Source: Wallemia ichthyophaga EXF-994
Taxonomy: Eukaryota; Fungi; Basidiomycota
Direction of reading: 5' to 3'
Assembly (NCBI RefSeq): GCF_000400465.1
Contig: NW_008806282.1
Span: 60,001 to 92,000 of the forward strand
DNA length: 32,000 bases
The position numbers and the translations under genes were made by a program. The notes below the pieces were generated by a model. It saw nothing but the letters and a program-made list of their open reading frames with translations, made no database searches and was not told the DNA's origin. Below, in pieces: positions 3,364-31,191 of this stretch (position 1 is its first letter; every line of letters starts with the position of its first letter).

Positions 3364-5460
3364 TCAAACTCTCTCCCACTCTTCAGGTTCGGGCCAACGA
3401 GAAGTAAACCAATTGCCCATCAATTCATTGATTGCGGGTATGTCTTTCTCCTTCTTGACGTCATCATTAAGGCAGATAAATGTGGTATCTTGGTGTGTAT
3501 CTGCCATATCAAGTTGCTGTTTTAGTTGAGATGGATTGTACACTTTCGTGAACTGTGACGGCGTTTCACCAAATACGTGGTTGTATCTCATTATCAGCCT
3601 TGCTGCAAATGACCTGGGTGACGTTTCCCCGTCTAAGACAGTGTTCAATTTAAAATCAGCGTCGTGCCAGTCGTCGTTCAGTGGAAGATTTGGAACCCCA
3701 CTAAACTGTTTAAGGCTGTCTTTAGGTGGTAGAAAGATTTCCAAACCTTTGCTACCTCCTTGTGAGATTAACTGAGTGATTACTAACCCTTCTGTCAGCT
3801 GCATCGGGATATTCCGAAAGTACTTACTGCAATCACCGCAATCACCATATTGTTCGAATGCAATATGCTTAAACAACTCTTCGGCTGTACTTCCTTGCTT
3901 GAAGCATTGCTCTTTTGTAATTGTGCAAGCTTTCAACCGTTTATCATCTCTCAAATCAGGCCACCCATGGCGACTGAGCAATCTATGCCATATTTGTCGA
4001 AGATAACCAGGACCATAGCCATCCATACTTGAAAATGCATACTCGGTGTTGAGTGGTTTGGGTATATGTGCATTATTCAGAGTTTTTTCGAGCTCTTCAT
4101 CCTCAACCGTCACTCTATGTGGAACGTAAACTTGGTGCTTCAACGACTCACCGCCTGTGAGTTCACTCCACATTTTATCTGTGTCGATTACTTGATTGGA
4201 AGCGCCCCATTTTCCTACTATCCATGACCACAGCAGAGCCTCACGATGTCGCTCAGTTATGAACCATGAAGCAAAAAAGAAGGATTGGATAGCCCAAGGA
4301 GCATCTTTTGTATTTCTGAATCGTGCTAATGTGACGTTGTTGAATGAGTTGTCAAACATTATGGCAGCCTCATTGAGGATGGGCAGCGACAGACTGCGAG
4401 CGTGATGTGCGATATAGGGTCTCCACCTCATACCGAACCGTCTTCCCAGAACCCAAGACGATCTAGCAATAGCGACACCTTCGCCATTCCGTGATCCTAG
4501 AGGCTTTTCTTGTGGAACGTACATACTGTAACTTAAACTACGCAGAACTGGACCGTGAAGTGGGGAGTAGTAGTCGCTGACCTCGTTATTCTTAAGTGTA
4601 AAAAAGTCATCGTTGTGGTAAACTATAGTGTCTGATTGGGCGTCTATGTTGTGCATTTGACCTTCTATAGCAAATGAGTTGAAAGTTGGAAGTGAGGCGG
4701 CCCTCCATTCAGCATTGAGATTATTCAGCTGATCTTCTGTTAATGATTGAGACTCGGGAATCGTAGGCATACGCCGGAAGAAGTTGAAGTGATGGTGCAT
4801 TTCAACCTTTTCATGATCGTTCAACCAAAACGGATGCTGTGCAATCTGGTTACCACCTTCCGGTGAGTCGTACGAGGAAGCAAGAATATGATACTGTCCA
4901 ACATTCTGTCCAACTGAGCGTTCGATTGATCTGAGTGCGTATCTAAGTTCATCGTGTTCTTGATAGCGGTGCTGGCTATCAACTTTCTGATCAGAGAATG
5001 CTTGCAAGGCAGAGATCTGCACGGGATCGCTGTCAATTTGTTAGGAATGTGATTGATCGCTCAATCGAAACGCTTACCTTCCGTTGACCCAGGGGAAGAC
5101 AGGATCGATAGTGCTAAATTTCTTAATATCAACGTCTTTGCAATGCTCCCCCCAAATTCCAGCCCCAATCCACTCGTCCACGCAGAGATCTGGCAACGCT
5201 TGATGAAACTTGATAGGTCGTACAGCTCTAGAGGCAGAATTTGGAGGATTTGAGCTGGAAAATACCTCGTGGCTCTCATCCTGTCCAACAACGATCAATT
5301 TGTATATCTCTTTAACCTCGCCATTCCCTTTGTATGTGTATACAATCAACAGGAGCAACAGGACAGGAATGGCGAGTAACTTGGTGGCATTGTTCTTCAC
5401 GCTTGCTTGTGTTATAGGCAGCGGCAAGTATCCATTATGCCTGAATTTACTGAAGACCAT
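3364..5460 (-). CDS. Stealth-family sugar-phosphotransferase (Xpt1/GNPTA/XcbA-like), type II membrane protein
   Basis: N-terminal TM segment (LLAIPVLLLLLIVY), CR1 IDPVFPWVNG|SD (intron GTAAGC...CTAACAAATTGACAG), CR2 ELRYALRSI...NSFAIE...YHNDDFF, and CR4 FICLNDD. A second short intron probably lies at ~3780-3830. Confidence 0.85.
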
Positions 5461-7005: not shown

Positions 7006-9769
7006 TTAAAGATTATTTACAGACGTTGAACTCCTCAAATGAGAAGCATTTCTACGTATGCTGTTCCGTAAATTGGCTCGAACGCCTCCTGAACGTGTAG
7101 ACACGTCGTCCGATATTTGATTGCTATGTCTCATAGAGGCTTGTATAGCTGCTTCAGTTTGGGCTATTTCCATAGCATCTGTGTTTGCGCTAGAAAGGTC
7201 TTCCTGTCTCACTCTCCTCCTTCTTCTCCGTCTTGGCAGTGTAGTGAGCTTCGGCATTGGACGATGGTCCAAATCTACTGATACATTGGTAGATGCTTGT
7301 AGTGCCTTTTTGTATACGTTAGATTTATATCTTTTCATATACTATATACCCACCTCAATCCAGTCTATCACTGATGACTGGTCGTATGCCTGTATAAGAA
7401 ATTGCTCCTTGACACCCTTGTCAGACAGCAAACGAACTCTAATAACATTCCGTCGCTTGACATAGTCTGCTGCAAGGCCGCTTTCGGCATTTTGTAACGA
7501 ATATTTCCGCAGTAAAGTTGGTGCATACTTGACGTTATTCGCAGGTGCATTTATATGATTTTGGAATGATGGTCTTTGCGCAAGAAGTTGTGGTAGCGCA
7601 GGTACTGGAGGAATAGGGGCATCTGCCGGAGGTGGTTCATGTACATAAGCACTTTCAACATCTGCTTCATTAAGATCGTTAATTTCTGAAGAAAGCAGTG
7701 CACGACCGTGATCCCATTTGTCTGCTTTGTATATTTTCAATACCGTACCATGTAATACCACGTAGACTCTCCTCCATGTCCTGTCTCTCGCTTGGTTGCC
7801 AGGTGACGTAAACTCCATCTTGCGTGGCATTAGTCCTTCAATATGTATACCACACTTATATTTCGGTAGCTTCTCTCTGCCCTCTTCCTCGCGAGGTCTT
7901 ATTATCCTCCTTATTCCACCAAAAATTGTCTCACGTAATGCAACCTCGTCGTACTGTGGAGGTGCCACCATCATATTTGGAAGCGACAATCTCCTCTTGG
8001 CTGCGTTAGGTGTTCCATGGGCGGGCAACGGTGTAATTGGGGGAGGTGGACTGAGTGGCGTGCTATTGAATATCTCCTTCCAATTACGACGCTCTTGCTC
8101 CATCTGAGCCGAGTGTGCTGTTGCAGGTGACGTTGGTGGGCTAGTACCGACGCCAATCTCGCGCGTACTTGAACTACTCTGAACCAAATCGTCGACCTCA
8201 ACAACTGGACTGGATGGTACTTGGGCTCTTTCCTTTCCTTTGAGAGTAATGTCTTTCTCGCCATTCAGCGGAGAGTTCAGCCCTACTCCTAATCCCTCGA
8301 TCACTTGAGGCGATTGAAAGGAGGATAGGTCTGTAAGTGACCGAGACATTTGCCTGCCGCAGGTTTTGGTACTTGCTACTGCGAGCGATGGAGCTTCATC
8401 AATAACATCCTTGTTAAGTTGAGTGACGTCTTTGTGAGACGTTGTCCGGTTTGGTATACTAGTTTGGGTGGGTTGTGTAGGTTGTAAAGGTTGCTTTGGT
8501 TGCGGTGGTGGTGGAGACGAGTCGACGCTGGTCAGCATGATTGAACTCGTTAATCTTCGCAATGCCTCTGGTGACCGTGAGCCTTCTTTGGCAGAGTCCT
8601 CTGATGGGCGAGCATCGTCTAGAGTACTTTGAGTGTTTTGCCTTGATCTCTGCTGAACGGTGACTGAGGATGCAGTTCGCTGATTCAACTTTGGTGGCAG
8701 CACGGAGGATGATTTTCCTGGAGTGCCATTGGCACCTGGGGATATTGGAATGGCACGAGGTGTTTGTGGGGGCACGAGAGCATTTGAAGGCGGCAGGCTA
8801 AAGTAATCGGTCGTTGGTGCATGTGGAGCACTTGGTCGCCTATATTGTTCTACTTGCTCGTCTTCGCCGTCGTCATCCTCAAAGCTATCTTCACTGTCGA
8901 TATCCTCAAGTTCGGAAGCTTCGGCAGTTTCGGCGTTCTCGTGGCTCTGCGAAGCTTGCACAGTAGATGAAGGGGGCTTTGAAGGATCAGCTGAGCCACG
9001 GGCGAGCGTGGGGAGTTGCCGAGCAGCTCTACGGACGTCTCTTGGCGAAGTTGGAGGAGTCGCGTGACTGATGAACTGATCACGAATCGGCGGTGGAGGC
9101 TGCGCTAAAGGATTGAAGGGAGAGAAAGTGGGAAGACTGAGACCTTTAGGCGTGGAAACTCCTGTGATTTATTTAGTGAAGCGCTATGACATAAAGTAAT
9201 AGCTCACTTGGTATAGGCGAGAAAGTGGATAAATCTGGGGGAGCCAAAACATCATTTTCAGGTGACAAGGGTTGTTCACGGATGCTTTCTTGGTTATTCT
9301 GTGGCTGTGGCTGCTCCGACTCGAGCTCTTCGCTGTAGTTTGGCGGGTGATCGGTATGTGGGACACCGTGGGGCACCTCAGTATCGCTGTGCTGCTCGTG
9401 GTGCTGCTCGTGATGCTCAACATCGCTGATCCTAGGGCTATTGGAAGGCTGTGAACTAAAATTGGAAGCGTGCTTATCGGCTAGGGAATAAGTTAGCGTG
9501 CGAGTGTGGATAGGCAGAGCGAACGCACCCTTTGAGGAAACATTAACATTCTCATTGCTGCTGTTCTTATTTGATTGATCGACTGGGATTATTGGACTCG
9601 TATCGCTATTCATTCCACCCAGATTGTTGTATAGGGATCCTCGTTTCGGCGGAATGAGAGCTGCTCTAACTGCAGAAGCGATGTGATGCTGGTGCTGCTC
9701 AATCTCCTCCTTATTGTCTGTAGATTGCTGATTCTGCTGCTGCGTACGCTTCTTGAACAGATTCTTCAT
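7006..9769 (-). CDS. Fungal PH-domain protein (YHR131C/YNL144C-like) with long disordered N-terminus (2 introns)
   Basis: Motifs LPKY...RKMEF...RDRTWRRVYVVLHGTVLKIY, KYSLQNAESGLAADYVKRRNVIRVR...EQFLIQA...IDWIE|ALQASTNVSVDLDHRPMP, then a poly-Arg tract. Introns at ~9165-9208 and ~7306-7351 restore the frame. The ATG is at 9769. Confidence 0.8.
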
Positions 9770-11741: not shown

Positions 11742-13094
11742 CTAGAAATATTTTCCTTTTAAAGCGTAGTTGTTTTTGTTTGGCGTTGTAGATGCCATAG
11801 AAGTGTCATCATGTTCTGGTGTATCTTTCAACATCCACGCTATCTGGGGAGGACTATACGGCGTTGGGGCCACGAGAGACCTTCCACTAGGGATTTGAGA
11901 TGTCAATGATTGTGATGAGGGTATGATTTGAAAATGAACCTGAGGTCTTGGTCAGATTTTTGGCAACGCATTGCAATTCCATATGCATACAGTGTCATTC
12001 AGCTGTTTGTAGGCTTTGAGAAAGGTATCTATAGAACCAAGCTCGATGTCTAATTCATTTTTGCGTTCATCGCGAGCCTTTCGAGTGCTCCTGCTCAATA
12101 TTTTAAGCCTCTCTGACGGACTTGAGGAAACACTCTCGGTGAGTTGCTCAGAAGCAGTCTTAAGCCACGCTATAGCAAAACCAGTATTACCGTTATTTGC
12201 AGCGTCGATACCGAGCCATTTTTTTGCCACTCCGGCATGAAATATATCTCTTCTCTTCATATAAGCTTTGAGATCTGCGGGTAAGTCGACATGCTGAACG
12301 CGCAGAGTGGATTTGATAGAGCTTTTCAGCATGACTCTCGAGGCATTAAACAGAGATGACGTATCTAGGTGCAGTTTGAGCAGAATTTGAGGAGATGGGT
12401 GTGTCTTTGGTATCGGTGGTCCGGGGTTGTGAAGCGTGTAAGCGTGCAGAGGTGACATCAGTTTCCTAATAGCTAGCGATTGTGAGACAGCCAAGCTGAG
12501 CTTAGAAAGACCGCTGTTATACTCTCTATTGAGTATTGGCGTGTCTGCGTCACGAGCACCCTCGTACCTATCGATGGCGGTGTCTGAAATGTATCTAAAC
12601 ACACCAGCTGAAGTGTTGAGAAACCCAATAGCGGTTTGAAGCACATTATCACCTTCTTTTCTGCTGCTTTCTGGTAATGTCGGTATAGAGTCATATGATC
12701 CAATGTTTTCTGCCAAGCCTTGGGCGTGATTAAACAGAGCTAAAGCATACACATGCAATACGTGTATAGTTTCGAATGTGAGGCTGCTTGATGAACTCGA
12801 TTTGCCTTTAGCCGATAGCTGTGAAGGCACAGTCCATACGAAGGACTCGTCGGATATAGCAACAATCGAATCATTAAGAGCTGCTCTTTCAAGTGAAAGG
12901 ACATGAGGCAAATAGTCCAATACGGATGAAACCAATGAAAGATGATCCCTCTTATCTGACTTGAGTGCTGAGTAGATATGCGCACGCTTGGCCGTGGATT
13001 CCGAGGCACGAGAGGAGTAATCTGCAGAAGTTGTAGACGTGAACATTTTACTGAACCAGATTGATTGAGTCGTTGGATATTGTAATCTAATCAT
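11742..13094 (-). CDS. palC: pH-response regulator PalC/Rim23 (Bro1-like domain)
   Basis: The N-terminus MIRLQYPTTQSIWFS resembles the PalC xxxLPTTxxISFS pattern. It has SSLTFETIHVLHVYALAL and, after one intron, NDT|VHFQIIP...IPSGR. It ends in an aromatic di-residue ...KGKYF*, as PalC proteins do. The ORF track start at 13241 is a GTG extension overlapping SMC1. Confidence 0.75.
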
Positions 13095-13116
13095 GATGTG
13101 ATGGGCGTATTGAACA

Positions 13117-13122
13117 ACGCGT
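13117..13122. promoter_or_regulatory. Possible MCB element (ACGCGT) just upstream of SMC1
   Basis: An exact ACGCGT lies in the 48-bp palC/SMC1 gap, and ACGCGCG lies at 13151 in intron 1. Cohesin genes are MBF targets in yeasts. The hexamer also occurs several times inside CDSs here, so the support is weak. Confidence 0.3.
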
Positions 13123-13142
13123 TTCTCACTTACACGTCCAAG

Positions 13143-16100
13143 ATGTAAATACGCGCGATTAGACAAAATACGCAACTGACGCAACACAGGCCACTCGAAT
13201 GGATCGAAGTGTATGACTTTAAATCTTACAAAGGCAGACACAAGATTGGTCCATTCAGCCCTTTCTCGTGCGTTATCGGCTCAAATGGCGGGGTGAGTAT
13301 ACTGCCATTTGGGACAATTCCACACAGTTTACGTGTTTACGCAGGGCAAATCTAATCTCATGGATGCCATCTCTTTCGTCCTCGGCGTGAAATCTGCTCA
13401 TCTCCGTGGTTCGAACATTAGAGATCTCATTTATCGTGGCAGGAGAGTGGGCTTGGAAGACGGCGATCAGGTTGATCAGACTCAGGAAGGTCAGAGCGAT
13501 TACTATTCTGCTCAAAAAGCCTCCGTTTTGGCTCAATACACGAGCACTTCTGGACGCGAACTCAAGTTTGAGAGAACGTGGGTGTGGAATATTATAAAGC
13601 TATTCAGCTTATCTGCTTTCAAGTATAACAATCTCTGGTTCTTCAGAATACAGGCTCAACGGCAGAGCTATCAGTTATGCAGACTACAATCAAGCACTCG
13701 TTAAAGAGAACATCCTCGTAAAGTCAAAGAACTTTCTAGTCTTCCAGGTGTGTGTGGAGATTGCGAGTTATTACACAGCTAATCCTCTATAGGGAGACGT
13801 TGAGGCAGTCGCGACGCAGTCATCTTCGCAGTTGTCGAAACTCATTGATCAAATATCAGGCTCGATAGAGTTCAAAGAGCGTTATGAAGAGACTAGGGGT
13901 GCCCAGGAGCGTGCAAACGAAACATCTGTTGCTCAAGGTTTGAAGAGACGCGTTTTGAATGGTGAAATTAAACAATTTAAGGAGCAAACATCTGAGCTCA
14001 AGCGTTTCGAGGATATGAAGGACAACAGGGTAGGCTTAAGGATTGAGGATCTCTTCGATTAGTTCTCACGTGCAATCCAGAACAACTTGATAATTAGGCT
14101 ACTGTTGATGAAATTATACCACATAGAAGCACAAATAACCACTAATACCGATGCCATCACCTCTAAGCGAGATCATTTGCAAGATCTACAACAACAACAA
14201 GTTAGTCACTGTACTATATCAGCACCCGCACTAACGCCATTCTCTAGGATGGAGCCAAAAGAGAGCTTAAAAGAGCTTCAAAAGAAAAAGCGGAAGCTCA
14301 CAATAAGACAATCAAATGCGAAAACACCATCAAATCTAGCCAGCGTGACATCGATAACAAGGTAGGTGAGAAAATGCCAAAGTTGCACAATCCGCTGACG
14401 CAAGAGTTAATTAGACTCCAAACATTGTTGCCCTTGATGCTCGAATCAGTCATGCTCGTACAAAGCTTAGAACATCAGAAACAAATGCCTCCCGTCTCCA
14501 AGCTGAAGTAGAAGAATTGCAGGAGTGTGTAAATAGGTACAAGGTAGATGTGGATAAGATTGAAAAGGCTGCCGGTCGTGCACAAGCCGAAGCTAGAAAA
14601 CTAAGCGAACAGCGCGGTGTTAATTTATCTGATGAGGATTTGAATGAGTACAGGCAGCTGAAATTGCAGGCAATGTCACTCGCACCAGAAGCTCGTCAGC
14701 AAGTTGAGGAGCTTGGACGTAATGAAAAAACGTCAAAGTCTTCGTTGAATGCAGCCAAATCACGTCTCAGTGAAGCCGAAGCTAAGCATGAGAAACTAAA
14801 GCTTGATGAACGCCGAAATGCTGCTAATGTGGAAGATACTCGAGATGGATTTCAGACTGCTCAAAGCAATTTGCAAGAAGCCAAGCAAAGGTATGACAAT
14901 TTACTTAATGAGAGGAACAAGATTGGTCAACTCGAAACTGAAAAGAATGAAAAGTTGCACGCACTTCTCGGTCAACTTTCCAGCGCTAGCCACGATCTCA
15001 GACAGACAGAACGCGATAACAAATTCAAAGACGTACTCATGACCCTGAAAAGGATGTTTCCAGGTGTTAGAGGAAAATTGGTAGATTTATGTCAACCAAC
15101 TCAGTCAAAATACTCCACGGCTGTTGTGACGGCATTAGGAAGGAACGTAGAATCAATAGTTGTTGACGATGAAGCTACCGCTATTCAATGTATCGAGTAC
15201 ATGAAGGCTCAAAGAGTTGGAAGCGCTACATACCTTCCACTAGACTCTCTTCAAGTCAAGCCAGTACAAGAGCGACTCAGAACTTTGTCATCTGGGGCGA
15301 GATTGACAGTGGACGTCTTGAAGTATGACAACATTTACGAGAAGGCTGTTCATTTTGCAGCAGGTAGCTCTCTCATTTGCGACGATATGACCATTGCGAG
15401 AGATTTGGTTTACGACAAACATCAAGATGTTAAGGCAGTCACCCTGGATGGCACGATTATTCATAGGTCAGGTCTGATAACAGGTGGTCAGGGCGCTAGA
15501 GATTCTGGTAAACGGTTTGACCAAGCTCAATACGACCAAATGATGCGCAGGAGAGATGAACTTGTAATCCAGCTGAAGGCATTGAGGAATAAGCGTCCTC
15601 AGCCTAAAGTGGACGAGGAACTTGTGCAGAACGTCAGGAAATGTGAAAATGATGAGCACAACTCTAAAGACAGCTTTGATGGAGGTGTTAGTCGTTTAGA
15701 TGGTACTCAAAAGGAATTAAAAGTTGCTGAACTCAATCATTCAGAAAAGTCAATGGAGTTGGACACTATGCGTTCTTCATACGATGCACTCAAACGTGAA
15801 CTGGATGATGTACTCGCTATAGTCCATAGAGCTGAAGATGGAGTGTTTGAGCCGTTCTGTGCAAGAATTGGAATAGAGAACATTCGTGAATACGAAGACC
15901 GAGAAGGTCGTGTGGCCGCTGCAGAAAGCGAGGCTAGAGTAAAATTCGAAACGCAAATAGCCAAGCTCAACAATCTGCTCCGCTTTGAAGAAGAACAGCT
16001 CAAGACGTCTAGCACGCGTCTTGAACGTCTTCAAAATAAGCTGGATAGTGATAGGCAGAATCTTGCGACATTTGAAAGTGAGAAGAGATCGCTCCAAGAG

Positions 16101-17286
16101 ATAGTAGATGAGATCAAAAACACAATCGCCACAAATGAAGCTCTTCTCAATGAACTGAGAGAGAGTGAGCAGAGTATTGCAGAAAACGTTGACAGTGTCA
16201 GGCGTAACTCACATAAGGCAGAGCGCCAATATGACGGTGCTTTTAAAGACATTGCAAACAATGTTAGTCTTTTCATTATTCGGGAATGCATTCACTAACT
16301 TTCTCTAGAACGACAACATTAGGATGCTGGCAAGTGAACGGTTCTCCATCTACCGTAAATGTAAAGTAGACGAATTGCCACTGGATCTTGTCGCTGGTAG
16401 CTTGGATGATGTACCATTGGATGCTGACTTGAAGGAGATTGAGCCAATGGATGTCGACGATGACGAAGATGCTACGCAGCGTGCAGTCCAGATCGAAGAC
16501 TATGGCATCGAAGTCAATTTCGATGGTGTAGAGGACGAGGACGAATTGACAGAGGAAGCTGAGTTAAAGTACCAACAAGAAATTGCTCAGATGAGTGAGG
16601 AAATTGATAGAATGGCTCCCAACCTCAAAGCCAGTGATCGGTGAGAAATTTAAATATCCATATCACGCATTGACTGACACTAAGATAGTTTATCTGATAT
16701 GAAAAAGAGGCTAAGTGAAACTGAGAAAGTATTTGAACATGCTCGAAAAGAAACAAAGCAAGCTAGAGATGCATACCAAGACGCGAAAGCTTCCCGACAA
16801 GAGTTATTCATGCAGGCTTTCGATCATCTAAGCAGTAGTATAGATGTCGTCTACAAGGAATTGACCACTTCGCGTGCCAATCCAACTGGTGGTACTGCAT
16901 ATTTGTCGCTAGAAGATGAAGACGAACCATATAATGCTGGTTTGAAGTATCATGCGATGCCACCAGGCAAACCATTTAGAGATATGTACCAGCTATCCGG
17001 TGGTGAGAAGACAATTGCAGCAATGGCTCTGCTTTTCGCCATACAGACGTACAAACCGTCTCCGTTCTTTGTTCTTGACGAGGTTGACTCTGCGCTAGAC
17101 AATCAAAACGCCGCCCAAATAGCCAAGTATCTCCGAAACCATCTGCGAGAATCACAGTATATTTTCATTACACACTCTTCTAGAGTGTATGAGAGAGCTG
17201 ATGCTTTGGTTGGTGTGTTTAGGAATGGTGACATCAATTCTAGTCAAGTTCTCACCCTTGATCTTACTCAGTACGATGAGCCTTAA
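13143..17286 (+). CDS. SMC1: Cohesin subunit SMC1 (multi-exon)
   Basis: MPLEWIEVYDFKSYKG...IGSNGG|GKSNLMDAISFVLG (Walker A), coiled coils, hinge (GVRGKLVDLC...ALGRNVESIVVD...VTLDGTIIHRSGLITGG), signature LSGGEKT and Walker B FFVLDEVDSALD. The MPPGKPFRDM motif matches SMC1. Confidence 0.96.
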
Positions 17287-23593: not shown

Positions 23594-26067
23594 ATGACGC
23601 TGCCATATTACAGAATATCATCGACTTTAGAAGGGCACAGCGATGATGTGAAAGCTGTGCATGGCTGCTCAGACAATTCAATTTTATCAGCCAGCAGAGA
23701 CGGGAGTGTGAAAAGATGGACGATGGATTTGAACGAGTACAAGCTGGAAGGGACATACGTAGGGCATGGTGCGTATGTGAACAGCGTGGTATACAATGAG
23801 GGTGAGTCTTTCTCCGCTCACTAGCACGTTTACGCTCACACTCCAACGGACGTGAAAGAGATAATCTCAGGAGGTTCAGACTCGAGGGTGTTAGTGCACG
23901 ATTTGGACCGTCAGGACAAGCCCCGCGAGACCCTGCTAGAGCATTGGGGCAACGTTTGCTGTTTATCAGTACACTCGGAAACACTAGTCAGCGGCAGCTG
24001 GGATTTGAGTGCGCGGGTGTGGAGAGCGCAAAAAGGGCAATACGAGCAGACGCTCAGACTAGACGGACATGAAGAGGCAGTTTGGGACGTTAAATGTCTT
24101 TGCGATGGCTCCTTCCTGACAGCCTCAGCTGATAAGGTTATTCGCCGGTTTGATAAGTCCGGAAGGCTTATCAAGCGCTATCAAGGACACTCCGAGCCCG
24201 TTCGCTCACTTGCTTTGTTGAATAACGACGCCTTCTTCTTGTCGGCGTCTAATGATGGCACACTGCGCAAGTGGGCTGTCGAGACTGGAGAGCAAGTGTG
24301 CGTTATGCGTGGACATTCGTCGTTTGTGTATGCAGTGGCTGCACTTGCATCGCCCACCGATGATGATTTCGTTGTCAGTTGCGGAGAGGATTTTGAAGTG
24401 AGATTGTGGCTGGGTGAGTTTGGGCTATTGCAGTGCCTCCTTTATGGCTAATCGAAGAACCAACTTCAGGTGAAACCTGCTTGCAGACTATTCTCATACC
24501 CGCTGTGTCTATCTGGAGCGTCACTGTGCTTCCGAATGGCGATTTCGCAGTCGGTACTTCGCAGAATCTTGTTCATGTCTTCACACGTGCGGAAGAGCGT
24601 ACAGCTACCAATGTAGCTTTAGATGTGGGTTTTGTGGTTTATCGGTAGCTGTGTCTCAGACAATAAATCAGGAATGGGAAGCACAATCAGCGCAGCTGAA
24701 GGAGAGGTTTGTGACTGTACACTTATCGTCCTTAACACTAACAAAGCCAGACAAACGGGCAGATCAGAAGAGCGGTTGGTGAATGAAAAGTCACCGGTAC
24801 TGATTGATATAGACGTCGATGATGACACACCGAATCTGCAGCTCAAGTGGGAAATGGGCGATGATGTAAACGAGACTGCCAGGAGGTTTGTCGAGGAGCA
24901 CAGCTTGTCGCCGAACTATGAAGATCAGATAGCGCAGTTCCTATGGCAGGCCGTGGGAGGCGTAGGAGGGGTGGAGGTAGGACAGCAGATTGATAGCGTT
25001 GAGGGTGCGCATAATGATGCGGAAGCAGAGTCAGAATCAGAATCAGAATCAGAGTCAGAAGAGTCATTAAAGCCGCCAAAGTCAAATTCACAGTCAGAGT
25101 CAAAATCAGAGTCGCCAAAGTCAAAGACAAAGTCGCCAATTAAGCGACTCGCAGAAATACTAACATCCAGTGCGAGTAGGTAGCATAGAAAGTGTCAAGA
25201 AATGACTAACCAGGTTGTGCAGCTAGGAGGGTGATTGTGATGGCTGGCGCTGGAGTATCGACGGGTGCGGGACTACCAGATTTCCGCTCACCTAACACGG
25301 GGCTGTACGACAATCTGAAGCAATACAATCTGCCCTACCCGGAGGCGGTTTTCGATGTGGATTTCTTCCGGGAGCAGCCCGAGCCATTTTACGCTTTAGC
25401 CAAGGAGCTATACCCTGGGTCGTACCTGCCTACGATGACGCATTATTTCTTCAGACTGCTTGAAGTGCGAGGCATTCTCAAGCGCGTGTTCACGCAGAAT
25501 ATCGATACATTGGAGAGAGTAGCGGGTGTTTCTGACGAGAAGATGGTAGAGGCGCACGGGTCGTTTGTGCGAGCTCGTTGCATAGATTGCAAGGTGGTGA
25601 GCGATGGGGCATACGTCAAGCGGTGCGTAATGCAAGGTGTCATACCACGCTGTCAAGAGGAGAACTGCTCGGCTTATGTTAAACCTGATATAACATTCTT
25701 CGGAGAGGCTCTCCCGAAAAGGTTCTTCGATCAGCTGGATGACTTGGGTGAATGCGATCTGCTCATGGTGCTCGGGACTTCGCTCGAGGTGCACCCTTTC
25801 GCTAGCCTCATTGGTTTGGTGGAGAAGAGCGTTCCGCGCGCGCTGCTCAATCTTGAACGTGTGGGTGAGCGCAAGTATGACGGAGGGTTTGATTTCGAGG
25901 ACGGGAGCAGGGATATCTTCTGCGGAGGTAGAACAGACAATGTCATTGTCGAGCTGGCCAAGGAGTGTGGGTGGCTCGATGAACTGATGGAGCTGTACAC
26001 CACTGAGCGGGGAAGCAAGGCGAAAGAGTTTGCACTGGAGGGTGCGCTCGACAAGTTGAGATTGTAG
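23594..26067 (+). CDS. Chimeric gene: Doa1/Ufd3/PLAA WD40 + trimmed PFU fused in frame to an Hst2/SIRT2-class NAD+-dependent deacylase (predicted 740 aa)
   Basis: Exons 23594-23801, 23859-24413, 24470-24624, 24672-24706, 24751-25175 and 25223-26067 sum to 2223 nt = 741 codons with no internal stop. Doa1 motifs: LEGHSDDVKAV, SGSWDLSARVW, CLQTILIPAVSIWSV and IDIDVDDDTPNLQL...ARRFVEEHSLSPNYEDQIAQFL. Sirtuin motifs: GAGVSTGAGLPDFRS, TQNIDTLE, VEAHGS, CxxC...C, KPDITFFGE and GTSLEVHPFA. Both domains are high confidence; the fusion itself is about 0.8. Confidence 0.8.
25028..25139 (+). repeat. Degenerate hexamer repeats (GAGTCA/GAATCA/AAGTCA) encoding a Glu-Ser/Lys-Ser linker
   Basis: gagtcagaatcagaatcagaatcagagtcagaagagtca...cagtcagagtcaaaatcagagtcgccaaagtcaaag, which translates as ESESESESESEES...QSESKSESPKSKTKSP. 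Confidence 0.85.
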
Positions 26068-26226: not shown

Positions 26227-26664
26227 CTACTCATCGTCTTCGTCACTCTTAGCCTCCTCTTCGTCATCATCGATTTCTTCCTTCTTTGCAGGTTTCTTAG
26301 ATTTAGTAGACTTCTTGCTATTCTTGCTTTTCTTTTCATCCTCGTCGTCATCGTCATCCACCTTGTCTGCCTCCTTGCTAGATTCATACTCTTTCTTTTC
26401 TTTTTCATATCTGGCTTTATCAGCCGCAGCCATATCCTCGTATGGCTTCCTCTCCTCACTGCCCATTTCCTTCCACTTGGCACCGAGCAGTCTACCAATT
26501 TCGCCAAAGGATACTTTGTCATTCTCTTCCTTTACGCGAGGACGCCATTCTTGTGACATGTACATGTACGCAGATAGCGCGCGCTTGGGAGCGTTTTCAT
26601 CTTTCTTTCCTTTTGTGGATGCTTTCTTGGTATTAGCGCGTGGTTTTGTCTCTGCTTTTGGCAT
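26227..26664 (-). CDS. NHP6: Nhp6-like single HMG-box protein with acidic/basic C-terminal tail
   Basis: KKDENAPKRALSAYMYMSQEWRPRVKEEN...FGEIGRLLGAKWKEM...KPYEDMAAADKARYEKEK is a canonical HMG box. The ORF is single-exon. Confidence 0.9.
   Translation of the reverse strand: MPKAETKPRANTKKASTKGKKDENAPKRALSAYMYMSQEWRPRVKEENDKVSFGEIGRLLGAKWKEMGSEERKPYEDMAAADKARYEKEKKEYESSKEADKVDDDDDEDEKKSKNSKKSTKSKKPAKKEEIDDDEEEAKSDEDDE

Positions 26665-26709: not shown

Positions 26710-26751
<42 letters not shown>
26709..26751. repeat. (GT/CA)n microsatellite, about 20 units, upstream of NHP6
   Basis: ttgtgcgtgtgtgtgtgtgtgtgtgtgtgtgtgtgtgtgtgtgta is read directly from the sequence. Confidence 0.95.
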
Positions 26752-27165: not shown

Positions 27166-29991
27166 TTACTGCACAGCGCCCATGATCAATTCACAGGTGA
27201 AGCTATTAGGTGACCTAACGACCATCTCGAGGTTGACGCCTTCACCCTCCTCGAAAGCCATTCTGGCCATAGCGAGTACCTTGCCTTGAGCACTACCGCG
27301 GATGATACACCCACTAAGGCGGAGAGTGTGGAGGTGAGCGCTACCCACGACATCCGATCCACCCAAAGCCATCATACCGAGAAGGGCGGTGAGAGCGTCT
27401 GTAGCTTCCTGTAGACTACCCATAGCGGAGAGGGTGAAAGAGTCGCGTAGTTCACTGTGTTCGCTGTGCTCCATCGACATTGCCTCCCATTCTCCATCGA
27501 AACTGACCCACTCAGGACGTACATAGTCACTTATACCCAGTTCCACGTCATCCACTTGATATTCATCCGCATATCCCTCCTCCTCCACCATACCACTATC
27601 TGGATCTACCTCTTTGGTGGTAAAGGTGAGAGTGTTGGAGAGTGCGCCAGTGGGGTAGCCCGCATTGTCACCGTTACCGTCACCTTCATCGTCAATAAAC
27701 GAGTAGCTCACGTACGTACTCCGTTCGCCATCTGCAACTGTAAGTGTATCGATGGGAAGGATAAAGTCCTCGCGCAGGCTACCACCCACATCACCAAGAC
27801 CCATCAACACACTTACCCCATCAAGTACCGCCTCTGGGACCGTGTTGCGCACGTGGTATTCAAACACTACATGCTCGCTGAAGAGGTGCTTCTGTACACT
27901 CACTACATACTCCGTCTCCTCTTCTGTGAGATGGACTGGTGGCGATGTGTGCAATGGAGCACCGTATCCAGCGAATTCTGGGATAGACGTGATGTTGGTG
28001 GTGCTCGACAAGGCATGTGAATTGTGTGCAGATGTCGCTGCAGAAGCAGGTGCATCGTGTGATAAGAGCAATTCTTCAGAGTGAGCGGTTGCGTTATCCT
28101 TGTTATTTTTGCTATTTTCACTCTCACCCTGCTTCTCACCTAGGTCTCCCAACCTACCGACATGGGTATCCAATCTGATTTGGTCCTTGGGCATGCGTGG
28201 GATAACGGCAGAGTTGAAAGGCTCTTCATAATTTTGCTCTGTGGTATATGTGCAGAGGGATTTCTCCAATACACCCACACTCCATGTGTGCTCCTCGTGC
28301 GTCGTACGCTTGGCAAGCTCGTCGTCGTGAATAATACGCATGTACATGGCAGCTCTGTCGCGCACCTCGTCATCGCTATCGTCGAGACAGCGTCCGAGGA
28401 GCACTTTAACTGAACGTCTAACATGTTGGGCAGCGTATGCGACGTTTGTGCCGAATTTTGCCAAACTAGATACAGCAGCGGCGCGTACGATTGCATTCTC
28501 CAACACTACACGGTTGTATATATGGCGAATGTACTTGGTAGGCTCGGGTGTAGAGGGGCCTTCCACACCAAGCAAGTGCAATACACGCACGGATAACTTG
28601 GTGAACTCGCAATCTTCAATAAATTCACAAAGGTGGGCCAGTGCCATCTCTTTGCTCTCGCCTATACCCTTTATCATGTCGATTATCGCTTCCACTACCG
28701 CACGTTTGAAGTCATACCCTCCCTCATCACGTAAGGCCTGCGAGAGGAAAGCGAGCATTGCGGGGTATTTATTAGGGAACTTGAGACATAAAGTACGGAC
28801 GGCATCCACCACTATCACCTTGAATTCATCGGAAATTTCAAGCATGAAGGAGGAAATTTGCTTCATTAGCCTATCTACGCTGGCTTCATTGCCTGTCTTT
28901 AGCAAGGTGGTGATTGCGAAAGTGGCAATGGAGCGGTTAGAGTCGGTAATAAGGTTTTCAATTTCGAGGTTGCAGGATGAGACGGTAAGAGGGTGTCTCT
29001 GTGCAAGGTCGTTGAGAGTGCGAATGGCAGCGAATTTGAGGGGAGTGTTGGGGGTGCTGAGAGCGAGTTGAAGAACAGCGACAGGACGAGAGAGATGAAC
29101 AGGAGTAGCACCATTCCACTGGCAGATAGCTCTCGCAGCTTCAATGGAGACCATGTCAGATTTATTGCGTAACCAGGATTCCAATAGGGGGAGGATGGAT
29201 GAGGAGAGGTTTGGATCGGAATTGATTAGGCGTGAGGAGTAGCGCACGAGCATTGAAAGGGCTAGAGGGTTTCTAAGGGAGGAAGGCGATTGGGTGAGGG
29301 ACTGAATGAGTTTCGAAATAGCGACTCTGTCTTTATGACGGATATTGTAGAGCAAACCGAGAGCGTGGTATTGGGCGGTAGATGAGGGGTTAGTGGACAA
29401 GGCATCAAACACCTCGTTTGACCATCTGTTGATGGTATCGGAAGCTTGTGGGTGGATGTGGTAGGATGAGACGAGTGCAGAGGAGGAAATAGCGGGGGAT
29501 CTGTCGACGATGGCATTCTTATAAAACCTTTCAAATGATTGGATCATGGAAGGGTGAGTGATTGCAGCGAGAGTTCTGATTGCATTTGGGCGGTAAATGA
29601 GGTTTGAATTTGGCTGAATATCTTTAATAATCGAGGAGGTGGCCATGAGAACATCGTCAGCCTGGTTTGATAGCTGCTTCACCACCAAGTAAACCATCTG
29701 CCTCAAAGCAGGATCTTTGTTTTGGAATAATTTGGTGATGGAGAAGAAAAGGTTTGTAGATTCTAGTCTGTTGAAGCTGTCGTCGAGCAATAAATATGAC
29801 AGCTTGGTCAATAGAATCCTTGAATTCCTCGGACTGATTGGTGATTGGTTGAATATTCTAGCCTCTTGGAATATAGTAGTCTGGGTGTGGTTAGATGGCT
29901 ACAAATCGGCGTAAATAACCCAATAACCCACCTTGTCTTGATTTAAATTATTTAATTTATCATCTTCATCCTTTTTTATATTCAAGTTCAT
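27166..29991 (-). CDS. SEC21: Coatomer gamma subunit (gamma-COP)
   Basis: Exon 1 MNLNIKKDEDDK...QDK (ATG 29991), intron GTGGGT...CTAACCACACCCAG, then TTIFQEARIFNQSPISPR, NLFFSITKLFQNKDPALRQMVYL, LLKTGNEASVDRLMKQI and HLCEFIEDCEFTKLSVRVLHLLG. Confidence 0.95.
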
Positions 29992-30048: not shown

Positions 30049-31191
30049 ATGGGCGGCGGTGATCTAAATATGAAAAAGAGCTGGCATCCTATGCTGATGA
30101 AGAACCAGAGAGTGGTTTGGGATAAAGAGCAGGATGTTCTCCACGAGAAGAAGAAACTTGAGCAGTTGAGAAGGGAGAAGGAGGAGGAGAGGCAACTGCA
30201 GCAACTGCAGCAATTACAACACGCTTCTACGGGCTCAGCACCTTCCGACAGAATGGAATGGATGTACGCTGCTCCTGCCACCGCTAACTCTTTAAACTCA
30301 TCCGAAATGGAAGATTATCTCCTTGGCAAGAAGAGGGTTGATCATATTCTAAAGGGTGACGATGAGAAAGGGCTAGCGGGTCAGCAGCAACAGCAACCTC
30401 AACAGCATCCCAACAATCCCCGTGACACCTCCTCTAAGATCAAACTAGACCCAATGCTCGCAATTAAACAACAAGAACAAGCTGCTTACGACGCTCTCCT
30501 TAAAAACCCATTTAAACTTGGTCAGCTGAGGGAATCCGCAGGTCATTCATCCTCTTCCTCTAGAGCTGAAAAAGATGAACGCAAACAAGCTAGACATGAA
30601 AAGAGGTTGTTCAAGGAGAGTTTAAGAGAGGGTAAAACACGTAATGATAGATTGGGTGATAGGTATGGTGATATAAGGGGTGATAGACGGAGTGGTAGAT
30701 ACAGCGATAGATACAACGATAAATATAGCGATAAATATAGCGACAGATACAGTGACAGATACAGCGACAGATACAGCGACAAATACAGTGACAGATACAG
30801 CGACAAATACAGTGATAGATACAACGATAGATACAACGACAGATACAACGATAGATATCGTGATAGTCATCGCTACTCCCCACCACCACGCAAGCATCAC
30901 TCCCCATCACAGCATCCCCCAAATCCCTCCTCACAGTCTCGCGCTGATAAGTTGGCCGCTATGTCAGCTTCTGCCCAATCACTCCAATCCGAACGCGACA
31001 TTCGCCTCGCAGACATGCAACGCAAGGATGATGCCGAGAAGAAGCGTGACGATATTGCTAGATCCAGAGATGTGAAATATGGCAACCACAATCAATTCAT
31101 TGCAAACGAGCAACGTAAAGTTTATTCTGGAGATGGCGGTCTAGCTGAGCAAATGAGACGGAGGGGTGGTAACGGTGGTGGTGTAGTGTAA
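30049..31191 (+). CDS. CWC25: Pre-mRNA splicing step-1 factor Cwc25
   Basis: MGGGDLNMKKSWHP is the diagnostic Cwc25 N-terminus. RMEWMY, DYLLGKKRVD and KIKLDPMLAIKQQEQ are also present. Confidence 0.93.
   Translation: MGGGDLNMKKSWHPMLMKNQRVVWDKEQDVLHEKKKLEQLRREKEEERQLQQLQQLQHASTGSAPSDRMEWMYAAPATANSLNSSEMEDYLLGKKRVDHILKGDDEKGLAGQQQQQPQQHPNNPRDTSSKIKLDPMLAIKQQEQAAYDALLKNPFKLGQLRESAGHSSSSSRAEKDERKQARHEKRLFKESLREGKTRNDRLGDRYGDIRGDRRSGRYSDRYNDKYSDKYSDRYSDRYSDRYSDKYSDRYSDKYSDRYNDRYNDRYNDRYRDSHRYSPPPRKHHSPSQHPPNPSSQSRADKLAAMSASAQSLQSERDIRLADMQRKDDAEKKRDDIARSRDVKYGNHNQFIANEQRKVYSGDGGLAEQMRRRGGNGGGVV
30697..30864 (+). repeat. Coding tandem repeat, 14 x 12 bp, encoding [RK]Y[SNR]D
   Basis: Units are variants of AGATACAGCGAT/AAATACAGTGAC/AGATACAACGAT. 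They translate RYSD RYND KYSD KYSD RYSD RYSD RYSD KYSD RYSD KYSD RYND RYND RYND RYRD. Confidence 0.95.

Follow-up and report, generated by a model that had tools for sequence, protein, structure and literature searches.

The gene and its product

The 32,000-nucleotide (nt) stretch of the Wallemia ichthyophaga EXF-994 genome analyzed here (contig NW_008806282.1, positions 60,001 to 92,000; the whole stretch is called the window, and positions are given in its coordinates) carries a six-exon gene on its plus strand at 23594-26067. This very probably encodes a single fused protein, comprising a seven-bladed WD40 propeller of the Doa1 type, a truncated PFU domain, a disordered linker and a sirtuin of the SIRT2/Hst2 subfamily. 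Rebuilt from the raw sequence, the exons sum to 740 codons plus a stop, and the computed product is a protein of 740 amino acids, 82.5 kDa and isoelectric point 4.8. The two short middle exons (3 and 4) were settled by comparison with a related species. The elements of the gene are the following.

23594..23801, plus strand: exon 1, with the start codon and WD40 blades 1-2 (amino acids 1-69), ending in phase 1
23802..23858, plus strand: intron 1, 57 nt, GTGAGT...AAAG, carrying an in-frame stop
23859..24413, plus strand: exon 2, WD40 blades 2-6, including SSFVYA at 24317-24334 (F225, equivalent to yeast Doa1 F222)
24470..24624, plus strand: exon 3, last WD40 blade with VSIWSV at 24505-24522 (W270, equivalent to yeast W265) and the start of helix 302-321
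24672..24706, plus strand: exon 4, 35 nt, EWEAQSAQLKER, part of the post-propeller helix
24751..25175, plus strand: exon 5, PFU remnant, linker and sirtuin N-terminal helix SPIKRLAEILTSS, all in one open frame
~24788-24967, plus strand: PFU remnant, amino acids 331-390, in exon 5
~24968-25132, plus strand: Ser/Glu-rich disordered linker, amino acids 391-445, in exon 5
25022..25060, plus strand: (GAATCA)x6.5 microsatellite, in frame within the linker and encoding (Glu-Ser)n, found by Tandem Repeats Finder
25133-25171, plus strand: sirtuin N-terminal helix SPIKRLAEILTSS, in exon 5
25176..25222, plus strand: junction intron, 47 nt, phase 1, donor GTAGGT, branch site CTAAC, acceptor TGCAG
25223..26067, plus strand: exon 6, sirtuin catalytic core and C-terminal tail, stop at 26065-26067
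Exon 6 motifs, plus strand: GAGVS 25246-25260; TQNID 25492-25506; EAHGSF 25549-25566; CIDC 25579-25590
Exon 6 motifs, continued, plus strand: CQEENC 25651-25668; FFGE 25696-25707; LGTSL 25771-25785

Two donors (25170 and 25176) and two acceptor AGs (ending at 25213 and 25222) are available at the junction intron, and all four combinations are in frame. Exon 5 has a single in-frame ATG, at 24854 within the PFU segment; the one after it comes at 25240 and is the M of MAGAG. A preliminary description of the locus, made from its letters alone, had counted 741 codons in six exons, had placed the PFU segment, an acidic linker and the first sirtuin helix in one exon, and had given the same 47-nt phase-1 intron together with the in-frame alternative donor and acceptor; it had also noted that no start codon would leave the sirtuin its first helix. 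All of this holds on rebuilding the gene.

The best protein match of the spliced product is a 740-residue W. ichthyophaga protein with 99% identity over its full length, and our model differs from the public protein (P0001) at four residues. The reference entry (XP_009268153.1/EOR00876.1, UniProt R9ALE6) is titled 'NAD-dependent deacetylase sir2A [W. ichthyophaga EXF-994]', and its protein cluster holds the same model in at least 19 accessions, whose locus-tag prefixes are those of many different strains. Public since 2013, the sequence is in RefSeq and UniProt; it is known as a record and unstudied as a protein. The reference annotation is an ab initio one from GeneMark-ES (PMC3849046), and because the public 740-residue models are ab initio predictions they are neither independent nor transcript evidence. 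In the available part of the Zajc 2013 expression tables the gene did not turn up, whether sought by name or by CDS length.

Comparative evidence for a single gene

The same arrangement is found in two further lineages. In a second species, represented by a Logan contig (L001, 48% GC), the region is syntenic with the window, in the order RRM protein, WD40, PFU, SIR2, HMG box and coatomer gamma. Two ENA metagenome contigs that are 98.9% identical to each other (L002 and L005, 29% GC; the low-GC relative) have the order WD40 - half-PFU - SIR2, with HMG-box and coatomer genes downstream as in the window. Full fusion models of 717 and 763 amino acids could be built, with 77% and 55% identity respectively to the Wallemia protein, and the order and strand of the parts are alike in the three lineages. 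A search of related genomes had been proposed in the preliminary description as a way to establish the distribution and to exclude an assembly error, and these two lineages speak against such an error.

The comparison also supports individual exons. The initiating ATG and the N-terminus are conserved in L001, and the N-terminus aligns with the yeast Doa1 structure 3odt from residue 8. The model of exon 3 agrees with P0001, and its donor GAT^GTGGGT is conserved in L001 (the caret marks the splice site), as are the acceptor CAG^GAATGGGA and the donor AG^GTTTGT/GTTGGT of exon 4. In L005 no intron interrupts the exon 4 sequence. Exon 2 probably starts at 23859, with an alternative acceptor of intron 1 that would put its start at 23871; a phase-1 intron occupies the position of intron 1 in the L005 orthologue. 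The counterpart of this intron in L001 (L001:4658-4723) is stop-free and in frame, the open reading frame (ORF) P0245 runs straight through it, and its sole canonical frame-keeping acceptor would remove the IISGG strand. It may have turned into coding sequence in that species.

The segment between the PFU remnant and the sirtuin helix bears on whether there is one gene or two. Its length is 180, 93 and 141 nt in the window, L001 and the low-GC relative, respectively, and it is nearly unalignable, yet in each lineage it is open and made of whole codons. The probability of its being open, estimated by shuffling, is 0.026, 0.17 and 0.0037, or jointly ~1.7e-5, with the match of frame not yet counted. 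Among the 14 codons of the helix, 10 are changed synonymously and two non-synonymously between the window and L001. As the changes are almost only synonymous, the helix is evidently translated, in frame with the PFU remnant. In the stretch separating the remnant from the helix, the window and L001 both lack an in-frame ATG. Of 51 stand-alone SIRT2/Hst2 proteins, all have the helix once ORF fragments and a single suspect annotation are left aside, and strand beta-1 is preceded by a median of 39 residues; the helix being near-universal, a sirtuin that began at MAGAG would be abnormal. Taken together, these comparisons argue strongly for a single fused gene product.

The propeller and the PFU remnant

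Doa1/Ufd3/Lub1/PLAA is an adaptor of WD40-PFU-PUL architecture that links ubiquitin to Cdc48/p97. Pfam finds five WD40 repeats in residues 1-300 of the Wallemia protein, a PFU match at 331-386 and SIR2 at 468-651; such an architecture search had been suggested as a check at the outset, and it returned the propeller, part of the PFU and a full sirtuin. The propeller aligns with the yeast Doa1 WD40 crystal structure 3odt with 199.8 bits over residues 8-301, spanning all seven blades. Using an alignment of Doa1 sequences only, AlphaFold predicts residues 1-320 with a predicted local distance difference test score (pLDDT) of 96-98. Foldseek places 3odt at the top for this model (TM 0.92-0.93, rmsd (root-mean-square deviation) 1.4-1.5 A, E ~1e-30), with the next-best WD40 seven to eight orders of magnitude behind (E ~5e-23). 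An earlier AlphaFold run on a mixed Doa1 and sirtuin alignment gave the propeller a pLDDT of 23-50, which was an artefact of the alignment.

The propeller is 83% identical in amino acid sequence to that of L001, and the changed codons comprise 113 synonymous and 50 non-synonymous, a clear signature of purifying selection. The fused copy has 36-44% identity to canonical Doa1 proteins. The near-invariant residues of the Doa1 propeller are retained in all three fusion lineages, including F225 and W270; in yeast Doa1 the corresponding F222 and W265 were reportedly identified as ubiquitin contacts by Pashkova 2010.

The PFU domain is incomplete. Its Pfam match (PF09070, 37.8 bits) covers only profile positions 54-109 of 113, and in an alignment to canonical Doa1/PLAA/Lub1 a gap of ~60 residues lies over the N-terminal half, including several near-invariant columns. 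The missing half cannot hide in the genome, because exons 3 and 5 are separated by just 126 nt. The same truncation is present in all three lineages, L002/L005 included. What is left is predicted from the Doa1-only alignment to fold into two strands and two helices (pLDDT 81-96) and is conserved in all three lineages, and this combination of a confident fold with conservation indicates that the PFU segment is a maintained remnant of the C-terminal half rather than a decaying one. Thus of the PFU domain first described here the C-terminal half stands and the whole domain does not. There is no Pfam match to PUL (PF08324) in the protein, and PUL is also missing from the precomputed Pfam list of P0001; the sirtuin takes up the place where PUL would be. 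The Wallemia protein therefore resembles Doa1 in its seven-bladed N-terminal propeller and in the most conserved (C-terminal) half of the PFU, and differs from it in lacking the N-terminal half of that domain and the PUL, with an enzyme in PUL's place.

The sirtuin domain

Hst2 and SIRT2 are class I, stand-alone cytoplasmic NAD+-dependent deacylases. The Pfam SIR2 match of the Wallemia protein (PF02146, 7.5e-57, 192.6 bits) runs over profile positions 1-180 of 180 at residues 468-651, and is thus full-length. Human SIRT2 (4y6l) is matched with 291 bits (E 1e-85), followed by SIRT3 (280), Hst2 (232), SIRT1 (187), Sir2 (164) and SIRT5 (79). By sequence, this part of the protein is a complete class I sirtuin of the SIRT2/Hst2 subfamily. 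The alignment with SIRT2 starts at IKRLAEILTSSATRRVI, facing SIRT2 LEGVARYMQSERCRRVI, which identifies the segment as the helix preceding the GAG strand, as had been proposed. The motifs GAGVS, TQNID, EAHGSF, CIDC, CQEENC, FFGE and LGTSL all align with human SIRT2 and are invariant in the three fusion lineages, so the earlier view that the catalytic motifs are intact is borne out. With an alignment containing sirtuins, AlphaFold gives residues 446-735 a pLDDT of 85-98, and the linker (388-445) below 50.

The core is complete in the manner of Hst2/SIRT2, with the N-terminal helix, GAGxS, TQNID, the catalytic His, four zinc Cys, FFGE and GTS, and is predicted to be an NAD+-dependent lysine deacylase. 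Unlike those proteins it has no start codon of its own, being preceded by ~445 residues of propeller, PFU remnant and linker, and its second zinc pair is C-x4-C in place of C-x2-C. No Pfam match to ZnF-UBP (PF02148) was found in the Wallemia protein.

Origin of the fusion

The position of the junction intron is informative about how the gene arose. It is in phase 1 and splits the fifth codon past the helix-final Leu (...LTSSA-T-RRVIVMAGAG), with the same position and phase in the window, L001 and L005 and lengths of 47, 52 and 66 nt. The stand-alone HST2 of Malassezia furfur has its phase-1 intron 1 in the aligned codon (...LTNAK-V-QRVLIMAGAG), so that an intron between the helix and strand beta-1 is common to both genes. 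From this we infer that HST2 itself supplied the junction intron, as its original intron 1, and that the stretch encoding the helix is the old exon 1 of HST2. The actual fusion point, on this sequence comparison, is within the linker. The Met two residues before the helix in the low-GC relative may be a relic of the HST2 start. Linker length differs between lineages by whole codons (by 87 nt between the window and L001), and the in-frame (GAATCA)6.5 repeat fits a linker that gains and loses whole codons.

The events would have run as follows. A truncated copy of DOA1, devoid of the N-terminal half of the PFU and of the PUL, would have come to sit directly upstream of HST2, and its reading frame would have continued into HST2 exon 1. 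The old HST2 start would then have been lost in Wallemia, with the first intron of HST2 becoming the junction intron. Read-through fusions should come easily in a genome as compact as this, with coding sequence making up about three quarters of the total (PMC3849046). The gene would illustrate cleanly how a new multidomain gene can form in a very compact fungal genome, with an upstream ORF reading into the first exon of its neighbour.

In the published Pfam counts for the W. ichthyophaga genome, four proteins have SIR2, two have PFU and one has PUL (PMC3849046, Table S1). Two PFU proteins and one PUL protein point to a canonical WD40-PFU-PUL Doa1 elsewhere and to a duplicate as the source of the fused copy, which on these counts is probably a paralogue beside the canonical Doa1. 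That the fusion replaced the cell's only Doa1 is rejected on the same numbers. At the Sistotremastrum DOA1 locus (L003) and the M. furfur HST2 locus (L004) we found no DOA1-HST2 adjacency and no neighbours common with Wallemia.

A side observation concerns a related annotation. The M. vespertilionis 'Hst2p' (P0212, 335 amino acids) starts exactly at MAGAG, without the N-terminal helix. As M. furfur HST2 (L004:7001-7130) has a 26-nt intron just upstream of the MAGAG point, the annotated M. vespertilionis model probably omits the first exon.

A putative targeting module and its alternatives

What might such a protein do? The explanation that we favour, and hold to be probable overall, is a fused gene in which a DOA1-derived propeller acts as a ubiquitin-targeting module for the HST2-derived sirtuin. 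The chimera would be built from the propeller in its N-terminal third, a helix and half a PFU, a fast-evolving Ser/Glu/Lys linker, and the sirtuin in its C-terminal 40%. The sirtuin core would perform ordinary NAD+-dependent deacylation, the Doa1-type propeller would bring it to ubiquitylated proteins, and the flexible linker of ~55 residues would give the catalytic domain access to acyl-lysines of those proteins or close to them. As PUL is absent, no Doa1-style docking on Cdc48/p97 would be expected; PUL is required for Cdc48 binding (PMC4828692).

Ubiquitin targeting by the propeller is the tentative element, something that may be so by analogy with its Doa1 orthologues. The Doa1 propeller binds mono-ubiquitin with a Kd of ~40 uM, compared with ~1 mM for the PFU (PMC4828692), and it is a transplantable, linkage-independent ubiquitin-binding domain (PMC5663479). 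Several points weigh against this and against the fusion protein as such. In yeast, an in vivo pull-down with WD40+PFU lacking PUL did not recover ubiquitylated Fzo1 (PMC4828692), because of which ubiquitin targeting cannot be assumed; the N-terminal half of the PFU is deleted; and the case for ubiquitin binding by the fused propeller is one of orthology only. No spliced transcript ORF was found within the protein cluster, where the public 740-residue models are ab initio. L002/L005 keep a Met two residues before the helix, making a separately translated sirtuin possible there. Finally, the junction intron carries an in-frame stop in every lineage, so that its retention would give a propeller-only product.

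The main alternative, though somewhat unlikely, is that the fusion is real and the propeller has been repurposed as an interaction, localization or oligomerization module that serves the sirtuin through another partner or substrate. The fused copy has only 36-44% identity to canonical Doa1, and its unique PFU truncation is common to three lineages. The canonical PUL protein is apparently encoded elsewhere, leaving the fused copy free to change its function, and the top faces of WD40 propellers bind many kinds of ligand (PMC3419727). Set against this, both the sequence and the fold of the propeller are still by far nearest to Doa1, with the near-invariant Doa1 residues kept in each fusion lineage.

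The stop in the junction intron raises a different idea, compatible with the targeting explanation, in which splicing acts as a switch. The spliced transcript would encode the full fusion and the retained form a propeller-PFU-linker protein ending ...SSASR*, such that the intron toggles between a ubiquitin-binding adaptor and a tethered deacylase. A stop follows soon after the donor in three lineages (SASR*, STSR*, and ...NVLN* or ...IVNV*), the window and L001 share an identical donor context, CGA^GTAGGTAGC, and intron retention is among the splicing modes seen in W. ichthyophaga RNA-seq (PMC3849046). We consider a switch distinctly improbable, as stops are expected by chance in short fungal introns and transcripts with retained introns are often merely degraded.

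Very improbable is the possibility that two genes have been wrongly merged, a truncated Doa1-like protein ending at the TAG at 25182-25184 in an unspliced 'intron', and an independent sirtuin. It would suit a very compact genome, where 88 nt separate the stop of the upstream multi-RRM (Mrd1-like) gene (23505) from the ATG at 23594, and it draws on the ab initio nature of all the public models, the in-frame stop in the junction intron of every lineage and the Met just before the helix in the low-GC relative. However, no AUG in the window or L001 is placed so as to keep the conserved N-terminal helix, beginning at MAGAG would in addition cost most of strand beta-1, and the linker, though unalignable, maintains an open and matching frame in three lineages; moreover the genes would have to overlap, because the sequence coding for the helix lies inside the upstream ORF. 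An assembly error is rejected, given at least 19 accessions across strain prefixes and the recurrence of the arrangement in independent assemblies of two lineages.

Within the favoured explanation of a propeller-targeted sirtuin, the strongest form would be a true ubiquitin-directed deacylase, in which a Doa1 propeller arising by duplication carries an Hst2/SIRT2 enzyme to its targets, either ubiquitylated proteins or acetylated ubiquitin itself. We regard this as unlikely. If it were true, lysine deacylation would be coupled directly to ubiquitin signalling, and the gene could be read as a 'Rosetta stone', predicting a conserved partnership of PLAA/Doa1 with a SIRT2/Hst2-type deacetylase in other eukaryotes, parallel to the HDAC6-PLAA-p97 complex.

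Relation to other deacetylases with ubiquitin-system modules

The preliminary description had drawn a loose analogy with HDAC6, and this proves apt. Both would combine a cytoplasmic-type lysine deacetylase with ubiquitin recognition, the Wallemia side being predicted and the likeness one of analogy only. They differ in that HDAC6 is a tubulin deacetylase of the unrelated zinc-hydrolase family with a ubiquitin-binding ZnF-UBP, and the Wallemia protein an NAD+-dependent sirtuin with WD40 repeats. Mammalian HDAC6 has been reported in complex with p97/VCP and PLAP/UFD3 (PMC9331760), and a mammalian SIRT2/HDAC6 complex has also been described (PMC3676797). By analogy, the Wallemia fusion would join covalently a PLAA-deacetylase pair that is seen non-covalently in mammals. 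It lends genomic support to a functional link between PLAA/Doa1 and cytoplasmic deacetylases that has so far come from co-purification with HDAC6.

Sirtuins of the Dictyostelium type offer a second comparison. They too have a SIRT2-like core (50% identity) placed C-terminal to a ubiquitin-system domain; in the D. citrinum protein P0240 Pfam finds zf-UBP (2.2e-19) and SIR2 (4e-62), and a ZnF-UBP was also confirmed in P0233. Unlike the Wallemia protein they carry an N-terminal ZnF-UBP instead of WD40 and PFU, and are of independent origin. The name 'sir2A' of the Wallemia protein probably comes from a best hit of this type. On these analogies the Wallemia protein may represent a third case, of independent origin, in which a cytoplasmic-type deacetylase has acquired a ubiquitin-system module. 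Should its propeller have kept ubiquitin binding, the protein would stand as a third independent solution next to HDAC6 and the ZnF-UBP sirtuins of Dictyostelium, and as a natural enzyme that recognizes one modification of lysine and removes another, giving a compact model of crosstalk between acetylation and ubiquitylation.

Distribution of the fusion

How general is this architecture? Word-indexed, profile and exhaustive HMMER searches of 1.84 billion cluster representatives (clustered at 50% identity) gave no other full-length fusion outside the clade. Annotated fusions are limited to the W. ichthyophaga cluster, and the two other lineages were found as ORF fragments on unannotated contigs. 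No orthologue surfaced from W. mellicola or W. sebi, where the word prefilter could have missed one. From these searches the architecture appears to be confined to this clade. Full-text searches on Wallemia ichthyophaga sirtuins and on sirtuins with PFU and WD40 brought up no account of it. Of the novelty suggested at the outset, the rarity stands, with no other annotated fusion found; the protein itself was already in RefSeq and UniProt. The significance of the fusion is limited by the public status of the sequence and by its narrow distribution.

The searches also brought up other unusual SIRT2-type architectures. An Armillaria protein of 682 amino acids (P0129) has a tandem double SIR2 domain, and two red-yeast proteins (P0006 and P0008, Rhodosporidiobolus/Rhodotorula, 1170-1190 amino acids) are very long SIRT2-type sirtuins with PF27812.

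Genomic context

In the low-GC relative the fusion lies at L002:837-3289 and L005:2874-5336 (ENA assemblies ERZ27248834 and ERZ28597539). Compared with the window, introns 2-4 are missing, there is an extra intron in propeller blade 3, and synteny is partly conserved. The 29% GC of these contigs is far under the 45% of W. ichthyophaga and the published 40% of W. sebi.

Downstream of the fusion in the window, ~160 nt lie between convergent stops (26067 / 26227). A (TG)x20.5 microsatellite occupies 26710-26750, in the short divergent region between the HMG-box and coatomer-gamma genes. Other features of the window are listed below, with the strand where it was assigned.

1372-2616: photolyase/cryptochrome FAD domain
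3364-5022, minus strand: ORF with Stealth CR2 and CR4 regions
7342-8961: PH-domain protein
11952-13241: BRO1-domain protein
14517-16298: SMC-hinge protein
26227-26664, minus strand: HMG-box gene
27166-29811, minus strand: coatomer-gamma gene
30049-31191: CWC25

The Stealth family, to which the CR2 and CR4 regions of the ORF at 3364-5022 belong, is better known from bacterial capsule phosphotransferases and the animal GlcNAc-1-phosphotransferase.

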